Made by a program: the position numbers and the translations under genes. Below, in pieces: positions 39,554 through 47,658 of a stretch of 64,000 nt of DNA. Position 1 is the first letter of the stretch. Each line of letters starts with the position of its first letter. Under the pieces are notes generated by a model, which saw nothing but the letters and a program-made list of their open reading frames with translations, did not search any database and was not told the DNA's origin. The stretch comes from Amoeboaphelidium protococcarum X5 (Eukaryota; Fungi; Aphelidiomycota). The stretch is from positions 761,517 through 825,516 of the forward strand of contig JALDTO010000192.1 of the NCBI GenBank assembly GCA_023515725.1. Direction: 5' to 3'.

Positions 39554-42541
39554 ATGATGCCGTTTTAGGAGTTGTTTCAAACGCACAGTATTTGCAATCC
39601 TAAAACATTGTGGTTCGCATTTCTTCTGCTATGCTCTCTTGGATATCTAGTCAATATAGCACTGCAGAATAACATCTAGAACAAAGATGTGGGCAGATTT
39701 AAAGTTGCTCAGTAGATAATGGAAGAATTTGAACTACCGGACTTGAGCCTCCGATCCAAGACATCATCTGCCGGGATTGCCTCATTGAAGCCGAGTCAAT
39801 GCGTCGACGTTATCCTGTAGACTAACGACGATTACGCTGCAATGCGCAAGACGCTGATATCGCTGCAGACTCAAGTATACCAAAACTTTAATTTGCGCGT
39901 AATTAATGACTACTTCATGTCTGAAATGGTTGGCGCTGTGTAATCGCATGCCTCTACCTACCGCTAGGCTCATTCTCCCTGTGATTACTGGAGACTGTTG
40001 GAAGCTGGTCAGGACTGTGATTACGTGCTCACCGTCAAATCTGGTCAAGAGTTCGTTGTAAGTTAGTCGCTGATGACGTTGGTTAAACTTGCCATGTCTA
40101 ATAGCTCTGTGGACGTTCTGCTGTTTGACTTTCTCAATTCCTAGTCCCGATCTGTTCATGGATACAAGAATATAGAGTTTTTGGGCACTCTGGATGGATC
40201 GAGCTTTCTGCAGCACGCCTTTGTCAACACTGCCAGACTTAAATCTGTAATTGGTGCTCAAACTTCTGGGGAAGAGTATTGCAATGCATTGACAAATTCC
40301 GCCGCACAGTTGAACTCTGCCTATTATCCCATCAATGCTCTCACTTTATCAGGATCTCTTGTGAAGACGTCTTTTATATCGAACAATCTGGCGCGACTAT
40401 CGCTATCGAATCAGTAGCATCTTCTGGACAATCGAAAACCATTCGTGTCTGTTATCATCCCATACTACAACAATGAGATGTACCTAAAAGAATCGCTAGA
40501 TTGCTTAGAGAAGTAAAGCCTGTCAGATATGGAGGTCATACTGATCGATGATGGTTCAAACTAGAAGTCTCGTGATGCAATGATCAGTATTGTCAGTACT
40601 TACAAGACTAATATCAAAGTTAGAACGTAGAAAAACAGTGGTCTCTCCTATACGAGAAATGTCGGCGTGTTGATGGCGCAGGGTGAGTTTATCATCTTCT
40701 TTGATCCCGACGACTTGATCAACAGCACCACATTGGAGAAGTTGGCTCTGAAATTAACAGAGTATAACGACGTGTCTTTTGTATATCCTGGTAGTGTTCA
40801 CTTTGGAGAGTTCAATTTCAAGGTGATGGATGAGTATGATGGAAATCGTCTACAGAAGGAGAATTATTTGCCATCATTTGCCATGATTAGACGATAGGAT
40901 TACATCAACGCTGGAGGTATGGATGAGACGTTTGAAGGATGGGAGGACTATGACTTTTGGCTGCGTTTGCGTGGTATGGGCAAGGCTGGTAGGATTCTTA
41001 GGGAGGAATTGTTCTATTATAGACGGCATAAGAATGGGATGACGGGGCAGATCGTCAAGAAGAATCCTAATGAGCAGCACTGGCTGGCGGAGTTGAAGAA
41101 ACGAAACCCTCAAGCTTTTGGTTTACCATAGACTGATGGAGCATATTCCCTTGGGAGACTTGACGTAAGATACGCTAAACAGTATAATATCTCATTTGGT
41201 GATCGGCACTTGTCCGCATAAAGCGCTCGCCTTTTAGCTGAATAGTAACAGGCTTAAAGTACTTTTGATTATCATTCTCTGCGATTCAGAGTTTCATCCA
41301 ACAATAAGCACTTCAGATCTTATGGTAACAAGACAGTTGTTCATGTGCTTTATAACATTCCTTATATGGTGGTCGGTGGGTCGGAGAAGGTGGACTTGGA
41401 TATAATAGAGGCTATGCACCAGAGCTTTAAGTCTCAATACTCCCCCGAGGTAAAGTTCCATGTCACTATTGTCACGGAGACTGATTGGAAAGGTCATGAA
41501 TGGTTCGATAAGTTTGCCAGATTCGCAGACGATATCTTTCATCTTGATAGAGTTGCCAATGGCTGGGAAGGGCAGCTGAGACTGGTAGAGTATCTAATCT
41601 ACTCGCGACAGGTAGATATAGTGTTTGTGCGTAATGGATACACTGGCTATAACTTGGCACGAATGATGAAGAACAGGGGAACGCAGGTCAAGTTTGTCGA
41701 TCTTGTTCATCTGTACACCAACGACTATTCTTGGGATTCGCTGTCAGCTCCATTCCATCAGTACTTGGACAAGCGAGTAGTCATTAGTCAGGACTTGAGG
41801 CGACATATGAATGTCAAGTATTAGCTTCCTGAGAAGGATTTCACTATAATCGACAATGGAATTGATCTCACTCTGTACAACAGGAGTAATGTGATCAAAA
41901 TTAAGCAGAAAAGCTTTAGAACATGGTTGGGGATACCTGTCACTGCAAAGGTTGTCGCATTCATAGGGCGAGTCGATTCGGAGAAAGACCCTGAGAAGTG
42001 GATACGAATAGCATCAGTGATTAAGCAGATGAGTAACGCCACCTACTTCCTTGTCGTCGGTTCAGGTAATAAGCTTGAGGCGATGTAAGCTTTGGCCAAA
42101 TAAGTTCAGCTAGAGCATGTCTTCTTCTTGGGATACCAGGACAAGGTGGAGGAGATCATTGTGGAGATCGACCTATTGCTTATGACCTCTATTTTTGAGG
42201 GTATACCGTTTACTGCTGTCCAATGTCTCGCAATGGGAGTTCCTGTCGTGTCATCAAATGTTGGTGCTTTTAGGGAAATTGTTACTGATCACGTAAATGG
42301 TCAACTGCTTGATGTCAATGATAGTGTTGAGAATTATGCGTCTGCTGTTATACGAAATCTGGATTTGGTCATCTCTCAGGACAACGTCACGGCTATAAGA
42401 ACCAAGTTTGACAAGCGAAGAATGTAGGAAAATTATAGGTCTTTAATGTACAATCTGGCACAGACAGTTGATCAAGACAAGAAGTATGCCGAGTTTACAC
42501 AACATGCGGCTGTTCATGCTTTCACGCCTATAGAATATTGA
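39554..42541 (+). CDS. Type II membrane multidomain glycosyltransferase A (degenerate GT2 + GT2 + GT4), 995 aa, intronless
   Basis: TM LWFAFLLLCSLGYLVNIAL. GT2: VSVIIPYYN..VILIDDGS..RNVG..FFDPDD..GWEDYDFWLRL. GT4: IPYMVVGGSE, IDNGID, FIGRVDSEK, SIFEGIP..GVPVVSSNVG. Confidence 0.9.
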
Positions 42542-42627
42542 TACTACTGAACAATAGAAAATAGATTAGGGAAATACTGCTGGCCTTGACGTTTGACGAT
42601 CCACTATTATAAAGTTCACTTTTAAAA

Positions 42628-44398
42628 TCAATACGAATCACTCTCATATCCCTTGATGGTGAATATGGACGGTTGCTTACCATAGAGCGAAGATGACATT
42701 TTCGCTATGCGCTACAAATCAGACGAAGATAGAGCAGGCAGGTGTCGCAGAATTCTCTAAATTCCGTCATAATTTGACATTGTCTTGATCATAGAGTTGG
42801 AGTTGCCAAAGCGGTAGTGATACATGGGCAGCACAGGCTTTTCAAACCGGTATCCTGCAATCAAGAAGCGAATCCAGAATTCCCAATCTTCATAGCCAGT
42901 TCTATCAGTTGTAAATCCTCCCATGGCACGCAATACATCAGCCCTGATCATAAAATTTGGCCCACCAAATGTATTGAGGAAGAATCCAGCAGGCAGTGGG
43001 CCACCAGCAACCAGCCAGTCTTCTCTGCCTGACGTCTACTAATCAGGCTTTGCAGCTGTGAAAAAGAGAGGTCTCACACAAATGGCGTCCACTTTGGTAC
43101 GCTAAAGTATTTGGAACGTCTCCTTTACTTCTTGTGGCATCATCTAATCGTCACCATCCAAGAACATGATGAACTTGCCAGTGGCTGCTTTCATACCGAC
43201 ATTACGAGACGCGCCTAGGTAAACGTTCTTCTCATTGCGAATCACAACTACCTTCCTATTTTACTAGCTCAAGCTGGGCAACTACTAGAGCACTTTTTGA
43301 TGATCTTTATCAGGCGAACAATCATCAATGACCAAAATCTCAATCTCACCCGGATAGTTTTGATTGATCACAGACTACACAGCGTCAACAAGCCATGACC
43401 CATGATTATAAGTCGCAATCACAACTGAGATCTTTTCCAATTGAATAGCTTTCTCGTTGTTCTAGGCTTTAGCATTGTGGTCAATAAGTCCTGCAATCAA
43501 GCCAGATATTTGTTGTAATTCGCTAACTGATAGAGTAACTGCACACACAGGCTAAGCCACTGGCGTTGATTAAAAAGAAACCTCCTTATCGATGGACATA
43601 GAAAGCTGCGCATTGTTAAACGTCTCCTTCTCAAACCACTCTATGATCATATCATACGGACTGGCGGTGAGTTCAGATATTCTTTGCAGGTACAAAGCGT
43701 ACGTCTCAGCAGCTAAAGACACTACCGGTAAGCTTTTGAAATGGGTGCCTTAATGCTTAGCAAGAGCCGTGTAATAGCCAATACCATGTGTGATGGACAC
43801 TAAAATAGCATCACATTGACTCTCCGCGTTGTTTTAAAGCCATGCGAAAGCATCATATGATTGTCGCAGCTAATCTAAACCGAAGATATCTTTCGCAAAC
43901 CCCTTTACATGTTGAATGCGTATCTTGTTAGAGTCTTTTTTGAGCCCATGTACATGTGAAGGGTCTCCGGCATGTACCAGAGTGACAGAATGACCTTGAG
44001 ATTACAGACTCTCAGCCACTTGCTGGTTGATGTGACCAGAGACTGACCAGCGCGGATCTTTGTGGCCAATCTTATCCCAATCTAGATCAGCATTGCCATA
44101 GTCTTTGGTTACCATGCACACTTTCAACTATTTATTAGATACGACGGGTGCGAATGGGCACTATTTCGGTGGACCATTCAGCGACTCTGACAAATTCGAT
44201 CCATCGTGGTTCTACTTGAGTGATGTAAAGCTCTACACTAAGTTCTAATTGCAGATTAGATTTAGGATGATGAATACAATATGGTCAGGTAAGACTTACA
44301 TGTAATAGAATGATGAAAACCGCGCCATAACACAATGTCAAGATGATTTATCTGTTTGATCTACCCATGTACATTTCATATAGATTTTACTTGTTCAT
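42628..44398 (-). CDS. Type II membrane glycosyltransferase B (GT4-like N-lobe + GT2); intron 44233-44299
   Basis: TM IILTLCYGAVFIILL; LKVCMVTKDY..VAESLQSQGHSVTLVH. GT2: ISVVIATYN..ILVIDDCS..GASRNVG..FLDGDD..GYEDWEFWIR. Confidence 0.85.
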
Positions 44399-44490
44399 AG
44401 TCTCAGAGTAGGCTAAAAATATTCTATACGAATTGACGCCGTTGTACAGTAAATGACTGAATGGAACTTTTTTCTCTTCACTTGATATCT

Positions 44491-44660
44491 CCATGCCAAC
44501 CCACTGTATACCTGGGTACTCGCGCTATTTATAGATGGCTTAGCAATGCAATGGTAATTCCATGCTCGATTTTGATGTTTCCATGTCAACATACCGTACT
44601 TAGATACTCACACTATTTATAGATGGCCTAGCAATGCAGTAGTAGGTCCATGTTCGACTT
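44491..44660. repeat. Imperfect ~90-bp tandem duplication in the GT-B/GT-C divergent intergenic region; each copy has TATTTATA (TATAAATA on the minus strand)
   Basis: Copy 1: CCATGCCAAC..TACTC..CTATTTATAGATGGCTTAGCAATGCA..CCATGCTCGA. Copy 2: CCATGTCAAC..TACTC..CTATTTATAGATGGCCTAGCAATGCA..CCATGTTCGA. Confidence 0.85.
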
Positions 44661-44727
44661 AAAAACTTTAATCTTTCCACAGTATTACGGCCACATTAAT
44701 AGCTATAGTAGTAGAAGAAAGCTTATT

Positions 44728-47658
44728 ATGTTCATTTAACGATTTAGAAGATTACGTCGATCCGTACTGGTGGTCGGTTTGATTTTGTACGTTCTGGTGA
44801 TGCTGTTCTCTGGCGATGGCAATGCTCAACTTAGAAAAGCTAGTAAAAGAATATTTGGCGGTAAAGTATACTCATATGGTGGGCGTGATTTTGAGATAGT
44901 TCCCTATGCCCATTCTATTCAAGGCGCAGTTTTGAACAAGGTCGACTCGGATGCGTAAGCATCTTGTGTTCACATTATGGTGCATGGAGATATTACTAAT
45001 CGGCAATTGTTGAATGCAACTTTATACTCCATCACTTAACAATCGTTTGCTGATGTGCAAGTTTTTATACTATCTGAAGATCAACAAGAGCGTAATTTGA
45101 GAAGTGCGCGTGACTGCTCTGGCACGATGACTATGGTTGCTCAGTCTGCATGTCGCTGGACGATGGCTCTAAAGGCTGGTGAGACGTTTAGTCGTAGAGA
45201 TGCGTTGGAAGACTCTATGGCTTCTATAGTTGTTGTTGAGAATAAGTATGGGATTTTTGCACTTGCTGGAGATGAGTAGCAGCCGCGTAATTATCTGTCG
45301 CCGTAAACTGAATGGCAGAATGTTATAAAACTGGTCTATGGAGGAGATTTTGCTCTCTCTAATACTATTAATGACATTGCAGCACTTAAAGCTAGTCTTG
45401 GTAGTGTGGCTCAATTATAATGTGCTGCTTTATATGATGAAATTGCGTAAATGGCTATATTTGATCGAAGGATTAGTATAATCTCTGGCAGAATCTCTCA
45501 GTTGGGCCACCAGTACTAGACAAGGTTGAAGTTGATCGACAACCGTATCGCTGAAGACTTGCTAATTAAGAGGCCGCCTTTGGTGTCAGTTATAATTCCC
45601 TATTATAATAGCGGTATCTACGCACAAGAGTCCTTCGATGCCCTCTCTAACTAGAGTTTTAGCGACTTGGAGATAATAATCGTCGATGATGGATCAAGCA
45701 ACCGCGAGCGCCAACTCTTGGATGCATCGATACAAAGCACGTTAAGTAACTGGAATGTGAGAGTTGTTAGTCAACAAAATCGTGGACTATCCTATGCGCG
45801 AAACATTGGTGCGTTGCATGCTAAGGGAGAGTTTATCATCTTCTTCGACCCGGACGATCTTATCAATGCCACCACGATCGAGAAGCTGGCGTTAAAGTTG
45901 TGCGAACACAAAGACGCGACGTATATCTTCCCTGGCTCAGTGCATTTTGGGGAATTCAATCAAGTAATCTTGAAGGATTTCGACAGAAAGAAGTTACTGG
46001 AAGAGAATTATCTCCCGTCATTCGCGATGGTTAATAGACAGGACTACATTATGGCTGGTGGCATGGACGAAACATTCAATGGCTGGGAAGATTATGACTT
46101 TTGGTTGAGACTGCTTGGTGAGAATAAGCACGGCAAGTTGCTGAATGAAAAGCTGTTCTTCTACAGGCGTCATAAGAATGGTATGACTGGGAAAATTATT
46201 AGCCAAAAGCTGAATTCTGACCAGTTAAAGGAACAGTTGGTCAAGCGTAATGCAAAAGCTTATGGTCTGTAATCTAGCAATGGAGCTGGTCACAAGATTA
46301 AGCGATTAGATCAACGCTATTATGAAAAGTTCAATGTATCTCTCTCTAATAACATACAATTCGGTAGCCATGATGTAATATTTACGTCACCGCCTGTCAA
46401 TAATCATCCATCCTTATCAATGCACAACATGAGACAATCAAAGACTCGGGATGTTATAAATGTGCTGTACATGATCCCCTATATGACCGTAGGTGGAGCG
46501 GAGTAAGTTGATATTGATGTGATCCATGCTCTTGCCACCACAGCCAAATTAGATGGGCATCAAAGATTCAGAGTGACAGTTGTGACTGAAGATGAAAGCA
46601 AAGCACACGTCTGGGAAGATCGATTTTCTCCTTGGTGTCATGAAATTTTCCATTTGGGAAAGATTGCTAATGGCTGGCAAAGTAGTATGCGATTAGTTGA
46701 GTACCTGATCTACTCTCGAGCTATTGATGTTGTATTTGTCCGCAATAACTACCTTGGGTACAATATAGCCAGAAAATTTAAATAAGAGTACAACTCACAA
46801 GTCAAGTTTATTGACCTCATTCATTTATACGCTATACATGCTGCATGGGATGGATACTCTGTCGATTATCATAAATTCCTGGATTCACGCGTTCTTATAA
46901 GTGATGATCTACATTAATATATGCAAGACAAGTTTCGCTTGTCGGCTGATGACTTTACTGTGATTTATAATGGAATTGATCTTGATTAGTATAACAAAGA
47001 TAAGATATCAGTGTTGAGGCAGGTGAACTTGAGAAAGAAGTTGGGTATACCGGCCAAGTCTCCCATTGTGGCATTCGTAGGTAGAGTGGACGAGCAGAAA
47101 GATCCAGAGAAGTGGATGCGCATTGCTGCACAAATACAGAGAGTCAATAATGCAGAAATCCACTTTGTAGTTATTGGAAATGGTGATAAGATGCCCATAA
47201 TGCAAAGTCTAGAGCTGTCTCTGGAAATATAACGTGTGCACTTTGTTGGACACGTTGATCATGTCGAGCACTATTTGGTTGATGTTGATGTTCTGCTGAT
47301 TACGTCAATATATGAAGGTGTTCCATTTACTGCTATTTATGCGGCGTCTCTTGGAATACCAATAGTGGCCTCCAGAGTGGGCGGCATTGCTGAGGTTGTT
47401 TATGACGGTGAAAATGGCAAACTGTTGGATGTGAAAGCGCCAATTGATGCGTACGCAAAAGCTGTGTCTGATACTATTAATATGAAAGTGGATCAGTAGG
47501 TGATTAAAAAAGTAAGATCAAAGTTTGATATATCTATAATGCGCTCACGTTATGTTGAGCTATTTACATCTGTGGCATCTGGAATTGATTAGAACAAATT
47601 GCGTAATGAGCGAGTTTCAAAGGCTTTCATGGAAGCAATTGGCTCATCCGAAGTTTGA
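44728..47658 (+). CDS. Type II membrane multidomain glycosyltransferase C, paralog of A, 976 aa, intronless
   Basis: MFIQRFRRLRR + TM VLVVGLILYVLVMLF. Shares with gene A: GEFIIFFDPDDLIN, FPGSVHFGEFN, GWEDYDFWLRL, YRRHKNGMTG, KDPEKW; GT4 SIYEGVP. Confidence 0.9.

Follow-up and report, generated by a model that had tools for sequence, protein, structure and literature searches.

Our analysis concerns three adjacent genes, A, B and C, which lie at positions 39554-47658 of a 64,000-nucleotide stretch (the window) of contig JALDTO010000192.1 from Amoeboaphelidium protococcarum X5. Two of them, A and C, are in our view best explained as duplicated, membrane-anchored enzymes that join glycosyltransferase modules of families GT2 and GT4, that belong to an old family common to chytrids and that probably build glycans by beta and alpha transfers in the lumen of the secretory pathway. 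GT2 enzymes are inverting (GT-A) and GT4 enzymes retaining (GT-B). Little is known of aphelid and chytrid cell-surface glycans other than chitin and glucan, and such glycans bear on how the parasite attaches to, encysts on and penetrates algae. With its two intact catalytic modules, a bacterial analogue and chytrid orthologs (some culturable), the GT2-GT4 family is a candidate for making an undescribed glycan, and the cluster may reasonably be regarded as a candidate locus for a glycan pathway not yet described. In keeping with the original prediction, which regarded the locus as undescribed, no characterised family member was found in the PDB (Protein Data Bank) or the literature. A, B and C are ordinary CAZy GT2/GT4 members and reveal no new enzymatic principle.

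Architecture of A and C

Full-length A, B and C, with TAA and TAG read through as Gln, were used in our own profile scans, and all other searches employed stop-free pieces or natural homologs. HMM denotes hidden Markov model, iE the independent E-value and omega the ratio of nonsynonymous to synonymous substitution rates (dN/dS). The two genes and their modules are as follows.

39554-42541, plus strand: gene A, 995 residues, open under a code with TGA as sole stop and ending in TGA; predicted anchor, putatively decayed first GT2 (GT2a), second GT2 (GT2b) and GT4
39605-39667, plus strand: N-terminal hydrophobic signal-anchor of A, residues 18-38 (Kyte-Doolittle 1.9-2.1, 19-residue window)
39674-40423, plus strand: putatively decayed first GT2 module of A (pseudo-GT2a), with a vestigial start motif at residues 84-122 (hmmscan iE 6e-4); omega 0.11
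40430-41131, plus strand: intact GT2 (GT2b) of A, with DDGS, FFDPDD, WEDYDFWLR and YRRH; PF00535 87 bits, family HMM 7e-81
41339-42499, plus strand: GT4 (GT-B) of A; PF13439 and PF00534 above cut-offs, family HMMs 1e-61 and 1e-44
44728-47658, plus strand: gene C, a 976-residue paralog of A with the same architecture, open frame, stop TGA
44761-44817, plus strand: signal-anchor of C behind the Arg-rich tail MFIQRFRRLRRS (Kyte-Doolittle 2.2)
44848-45567, plus strand: putatively decayed first GT2 module of C, with a vestigial motif (iE 2e-3) and an hhalign match; omega 0.32
45577-46272, plus strand: intact GT2 (GT2b) of C; PF00535 2e-21 with the stop-free piece and 98 bits when read through, family HMM 5e-79
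46450-47610, plus strand: GT4 (GT-B) of C; matches to PF13439, PF00534 and PF13692

In both proteins, one N-terminal hydrophobic helix is followed by a fast-evolving region of ~250 residues, the intact GT2, a linker and the GT4, and they are 61-66% identical to each other in the GT2 domain and 44-53% in the GT4. This agrees with the original prediction of intronless, signal-anchored paralogs of ~980-995 residues, each with an intact GT2 and GT4. With stops read through, PF00535 scores 87.1 bits in A, 96.5 in B and 98 in C (cut-off 23.3) and PF00534 scores 94 in A and 91.5 in C, while PF13439, which describes the GT4 N-lobe, reaches 30-31 bits in both A and C, just above its cut-off; the stop-free pieces recover the same Pfam families as the read-through proteins. 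The GT2b modules keep DDGS, the DxD motif (FFDPDD) and a downstream acidic loop (WEDYDFWLR) plus YRRH, and the GT4 modules keep the glycine loop, GR..K and, of EX7E, the first Glu.

The region between anchor and GT2b had been described as degenerate and GT2-like, a description that our data weakly support. PF00535 finds no match there in either protein, the vestigial start motif being all that is detected, and hhalign aligns the region in register with the first GT2 of the relatives (P=1.2e-3) so that NDYF stands for DDGS and KSGQ or KAGE for DxD. In a profile-profile comparison, one chytrid homolog gives a match over its equivalent region with 88% probability. Hence, the first module of A and C may be a decayed, still constrained pseudo-GT2 that has lost its DxD.

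Relatives in bacteria, chytrids and other eukaryotes

An exhaustive profile-free search with a 205-residue GT2 piece of C returned 118,830 matches, the best of which are ~1000 residues or longer and of GT2-GT2-GT4 order. A and C are collinear with their best relatives, bacterial GT2-GT2-GT4 proteins among them, at 33-35% identity over ~690 residues, and a single phmmer domain spans 688-696 of the 696 positions of GT2b-linker-GT4 for both.

Named bacterial members are a glycosyltransferase from Azospirillum aestuarii (P0011) and one from a Gemmatimonadota metagenome-assembled genome (MAG). In both bacterial-type neighbourhoods that were read (P0011, P0272), the gene sits beside Wzm/Wzt ABC-transporter genes, large methyltransferases, an epimerase and further GT4s, a setting characteristic of O-antigen or capsule loci that depend on an ABC transporter. 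In such loci (O9a-type), multidomain transferases polymerise the chain, and the GT2/GT4 architecture is bacterial in type, as had been proposed. The Azospirillum locus (L178:1-24746) holds Wzm, Wzt with Wzt_C, a 733-residue multi-methyltransferase, an epimerase and four more multidomain GT2/GT4 genes. While the bacterial proteins share the collinear GT2b-linker-GT4 and the same catalytic motifs with A and C, they differ in that their first GT2 looks active and a membrane anchor is absent. Further domains (methyltransferase, carbamoyltransferase) are often fused to them, their genes adjoin an ABC exporter, and they work at the cytoplasmic face. None of this exporter and fusion context surrounds the aphelid genes, and among the window neighbours neither a Wzm/Wzt exporter nor a chain-terminating methyltransferase was found, the sole ABC gene there being of the peroxisomal ABCD type. 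A GTDB genome scan with the family alignment met mostly generic EDYDFWLR-type GT2 genes, two of 80 loci matching through to GT4.

Among chytrids, homologs annotated as 'hypothetical protein' occur in Lobulomyces angularis (KAJ3393915.1), Clydaea vesicula (KAJ3224557.1), Quaeritorhiza haematococci, Obelidium mucronatum, Blyttiomyces sp. and a Lobulomycetales MAG. Like A and C, they have an N-terminal hydrophobic segment, a seemingly decayed first GT2, a GT2 with FLDPDD and EDYDFWLR, and then the GT4; unlike A and C, they are longer, with many insertions, and only 26-36% identical. As far as seen, they are single genes, whereas the aphelid has the A-B-C cluster.

Two more homologs (P0122, P0112) lie on contigs that are syntenic with each other and rich in eukaryotic housekeeping genes. 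These gene-dense contigs (L176:7730-18744, GC 66%; L177:2471-14322, GC 48%) have common neighbours around the family member, namely ParA/NBP35-like, Cdc6/AAA, a CH-domain protein, UCH, an MTS methyltransferase and a WD40 protein. The CCT-epsilon of L177 is nearest to early-diverging fungi, at 67-70% identity to named fungi, and the two contigs may represent a fungal-affiliated lineage that has yet to be sampled.

Closest to A and C stands P0016, with ~50% identity in the GT2 and a similarly non-canonical N region, on a short contig that is read with the standard code. A metagenomic contig with another homolog, P0007 (L015:792-11109, GC 62%), has a UAA-type nucleotide-sugar transporter, a 902-residue GT4 protein and a methyltransferase alongside, and a sister contig holds a GDP-mannose-dehydratase-like epimerase. 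From its gene content, the P0007 locus looks like a glycan gene cluster of a eukaryote-like organism, and its transporter fits luminal action of the homolog. An ESM Atlas feature search with P0016 gave generic GT2 clusters only.

Phylogeny

The family tree (62 rows, 668 columns, LG+C20+F+G4) was rooted on shorter Firmicutes-type GT2-GT4 proteins, and support is given as ultrafast bootstrap/Shimodaira-Hasegawa-like approximate likelihood ratio test (UFBoot/SH-aLRT). Near-duplicates (P0151-P0153, P0265) and many close bacterial and outgroup rows were omitted from it. The core family including A and C, with GT2a-GT2b-GT4 as its ancestral layout, separates from the outgroup at 100/100. Within it, the membrane-anchored eukaryote-type proteins form a clade at 90/95 (one clade in 92% of bootstrap trees) that is sister to, not nested inside, a bacterial-type clade (87/96). 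A and C are sisters (100/98), they group with P0016 (100/96), and these three are sister to the chytrids and other single-GT2 eukaryote-type proteins (74/86). In an earlier quick tree under a simpler model, the three groups formed a polytomy.

The sister position of A and C upholds the local duplication that had been predicted, and by the tree it took place within the aphelid lineage, probably before its two genome copies (see below) diverged. The anchored eukaryotic branch occurs in the aphelid, in chytrid fungi and in other fungal-affiliated organisms, its sister branch being bacterial in type, and the GT2+GT4 fusion was inherited ready-made rather than assembled in the aphelid. We envisage that a three-module enzyme entered, or was common to, an early eukaryotic lineage once, and that the eukaryotic branch then may have gained its anchor while the first GT2 decayed (aphelid, chytrids) or was lost (other members). 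If so, the family would be a clean example of a whole multidomain bacterial-type enzyme retained in eukaryotes, with an anchor gained and one of three activities lost.

Genetic code, second genome copy and selection

The A-B-C frames are open only with TAA and TAG as sense codons and TGA as sole stop, and all three genes are intact. Across the window, frames of at least 200 residues number 61 under this code and 6 under the standard code; this pattern of long frames agrees with the published code of Amoeboaphelidium protococcarum, in which TAA and TAG are reported to encode Gln (PMC5304391). In-frame TAR codons (TAA or TAG) number 22 in A, 24 in B and 17 in C. A family-invariant Gln of the GT2 is written TAA in A (40514-40516) and TAG in C (45652-45654), which is direct in-family evidence that both codons stand for Gln. 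The share of Gln codons written TAA/TAG is 0.37 in A, 0.60 in B and 0.32 in C, compared with 0.36-0.71 in neighbouring genes, and the GC content of A-B-C matches that of these neighbours.

The flanks of the cluster comprise PFK (phosphofructokinase), an SQS_PSY-like gene, delta-COP, FIBP, Ysc84, an ABCD transporter and Hsp70, so the predicted setting of A (plus), B (minus) and C (plus) amid housekeeping genes is borne out by the TGA-only frames and by the PFK and delta-COP flanks. The neighbourhood is ordinary nuclear. Moreover, the whole 12-kb region is collinear on contig C212 (A-B-C at ~202400-210700) at 91.6% nucleotide identity, and all three frames are intact there as well. Between the two copies, synonymous divergence (dS) is 0.26-0.29, dN/dS is 0.075 for A, 0.10 for B and 0.11 for C, and amino-acid identity is 95.5% for A and 94.1% for C. 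Omega falls to 0.025-0.065 in the catalytic domains, as against 0.11 and 0.32 in the N regions of A and C. The collinear copy and low dN/dS establish A, B and C as real genes, and the C212 copy with its dS is more in line with two diverged genome copies (homeologs) than with alleles. A Logan contig from SRR845265 (1-2299) is 97.3% identical to the C212 gene C and 92.4% to the window copy; it probably derives from another strain or the other genome copy.

Origin of the cluster

The original prediction saw A, B and C as a module that this organism had acquired horizontally. This part of it did not hold up: there are homologs in chytrids and on syntenic contigs with clearly eukaryotic neighbours, the eukaryote-type proteins form one clade outside the bacterial one, and GC and TAR use for Gln are the host's, so that any bacterial origin would have to be ancient and shared. 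A recent, lineage-specific transfer from a bacterium to the aphelid, after which the gene was duplicated locally and redirected into the secretory pathway, could draw on the best full-length BLAST matches of A and C, which are bacterial-type (33-35% identity), on the absence of introns from the genes and on an architecture typical of bacterial polysaccharide loci. We nevertheless hold it to be improbable, for no bacterial protein exceeds ~35% identity, A and C sit within the anchored eukaryote-type clade together with chytrids, host-like composition argues against a newcomer, and P0016, on a standard-code contig, has the same decayed first module. That the genes came from a giant virus or the algal host strikes us as more improbable still. 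Although the contigs of the homologs P0004 and P0007 are gene-dense, poor in introns and rich in ORFans, and encode a RING finger and a sulfotransferase, an IMG/VR scan with the family alignment gave generic GT2 matches and none of full length, no named algal homolog appeared, and in the tree A and C fall with P0016 and the chytrid clade. That the cluster might be an artefact, be it contamination, misassembly or decaying pseudogenes, we regard as practically negligible. Only the bacterial look of the domains speaks for it, whereas the genes are embedded in a large contig with eukaryotic housekeeping genes on either side, have conserved Gln positions written in the reassigned codons of the host and possess a collinear C212 copy under strong purifying selection, and on these grounds an artefact was ruled out.

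Proposed function

For C, the short Arg-rich tail together with the single helix suggests type II topology, which would place the catalytic domains in the lumen of the endoplasmic reticulum (ER) or Golgi. A and C could then each perform one inverting (beta) and one retaining (alpha) transfer, and the paired transfers may build a polymer of alternating disaccharide repeats or else attach one defined beta/alpha unit to a glycoconjugate that is secreted or sits at the surface (cyst, zoospore coat), with B perhaps contributing a further step. That A and C are type II secretory enzymes with two activities is what we infer from the Wzm/Wzt contexts, the nearest structures and the transporter beside P0007; a surface or cyst-wall glycan as the product is pure inference on our part.

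The nearest solved structures to GT2b are K4CP (PDB 2Z86, E 1e-11) and PmHS2 (PDB 8VH7, E 6e-7), and those to the GT4 are BshA, Cps3D, WaaG and similar enzymes. In the E. coli K4 chondroitin polymerase K4CP and the Pasteurella heparosan synthase PmHS2, two modules of a single polypeptide alternate to make a disaccharide-repeat polymer, and PmHS2 pairs an inverting with a retaining activity, as we propose for A and C. The likeness is distant and confined to the GT2 core; unlike in A and C, the second module is not a GT4, and these bacterial enzymes are soluble or peripheral. By analogy only, the animal enzymes LARGE1 and EXT1/EXT2 combine a type II anchor with two alternating transferase domains to make a repeat glycan in the secretory pathway, although they belong to other CAZy families (GT8/GT49, GT47/GT64) and no sequence relationship with A and C is expected.

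Several points weigh against our reading of A and C. The canonical EX7E of the GT4 is incomplete, its second Glu being replaced by Q in A and by Y in C. Two other eukaryote-type members likewise have Q there and one bacterial member has M, so the position varies within the family and its loss in A and C may or may not matter. Topology is less certain for A than for C, as the tail of A is near neutral and not clearly positive-inside. Processivity of A and C is assumed by analogy, and B, if cytosolic, would not share a compartment with them. As to the tree, most bacterial-type and many eukaryote-type rows are metagenomic and labelled from anchors, fusions and context, not from taxonomy; monophyly of the eukaryote-type clade is well, yet not decisively, supported (90/95), and the link between aphelid and chytrid proteins is weak (74/86).

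A tentative alternative is that GT2b and GT4 are non-processive and place one sugar each onto a glycoprotein or glycolipid core (O-glycan, glycosylphosphatidylinositol side chain) without making a polymer. Most GT2 and GT4 enzymes are non-processive, A and C show no sequence sign of processivity, and their altered EX7E would agree with this too. Set against it, and by analogy only, are the bacterial-type members beside Wzm/Wzt, where multidomain transferases polymerise chains, and the nearest solved GT2, which is the polymerase K4CP. Doubtful in our eyes is the more specific scenario in which zoosporic fungal relatives (aphelids, chytrids and their kin) have a Golgi-resident single-chain beta/alpha polymerase that descends from a bacterial O-antigen-type polymerase, that makes a polysaccharide of the surface or cyst wall and that, in the aphelid, has been duplicated and teamed with B to form a small biosynthetic cluster. 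Luminal beta/alpha glycan building by anchored A and C, whether or not it yields a polymer, remains the account that we favour.

Gene B and the B/C spacer

Gene B lies between A and C on the opposite strand.

42628-44328, minus strand: gene B, 566 residues, an N domain followed by a GT2; open frame, start codon uncertain (Met 1 or a Met near residue 72)
42769-43440, minus strand: intact GT2 of B, with FLDGDD and YEDWEFWIR; PF00535 96.5 bits, omega 0.025
43444-44109, minus strand: N domain of B, residues 74-295; no Pfam match, omega 0.17
44329-44727, no strand: divergent B/C intergenic region, with 64-nucleotide direct repeats at 44509-44572 and 44597-44660, each with TATTTATAG (81% identity, spacing 88)

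B had been described as a GT4-like N-lobe followed by a GT2. The GT2 stood up to analysis, and it scores 87 bits with the family GT2a HMM versus 61 bits with that for GT2b; it was not copied recently from the GT2 of A or C. The N-lobe did not: residues 74-295 match no Pfam family with stop-free pieces and neither PF13439 nor PF13579 when read through, and hhalign against the family GT4 N-lobe profile gave a weak match (P=0.005, probability 7.5%). Stop-free pieces of B reach 92 residues at most, and the C212 copy gives no longer ones. Likewise, the one transmembrane helix foreseen for every gene is found in A and C as the N-terminal helix and is missing from B, where no window exceeds a Kyte-Doolittle value of 1.6. 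Codons 1-73 of B are weakly constrained (omega 0.47). B is a separate, strongly constrained GT2 enzyme that lacks a convincing anchor and is arranged divergently to C.

The 64-nucleotide pair in the spacer was detected by a separate repeat search, Tandem Repeats Finder having reported nothing there. An upstream in-frame Met at 44461 was rejected as the start of C: positions 44461-44727 carry the TATA-like repeat in duplicate, and the anchor follows Met 44728. The repeats with TATTTATAG in the spacer support Met 44728 as the start of C.

In the whole genome, only ~3-4 loci per genome copy besides A, B and C exceed the PF00535 cut-off, so the A-B-C cluster makes up a large share of the classical GT2 genes of this organism.

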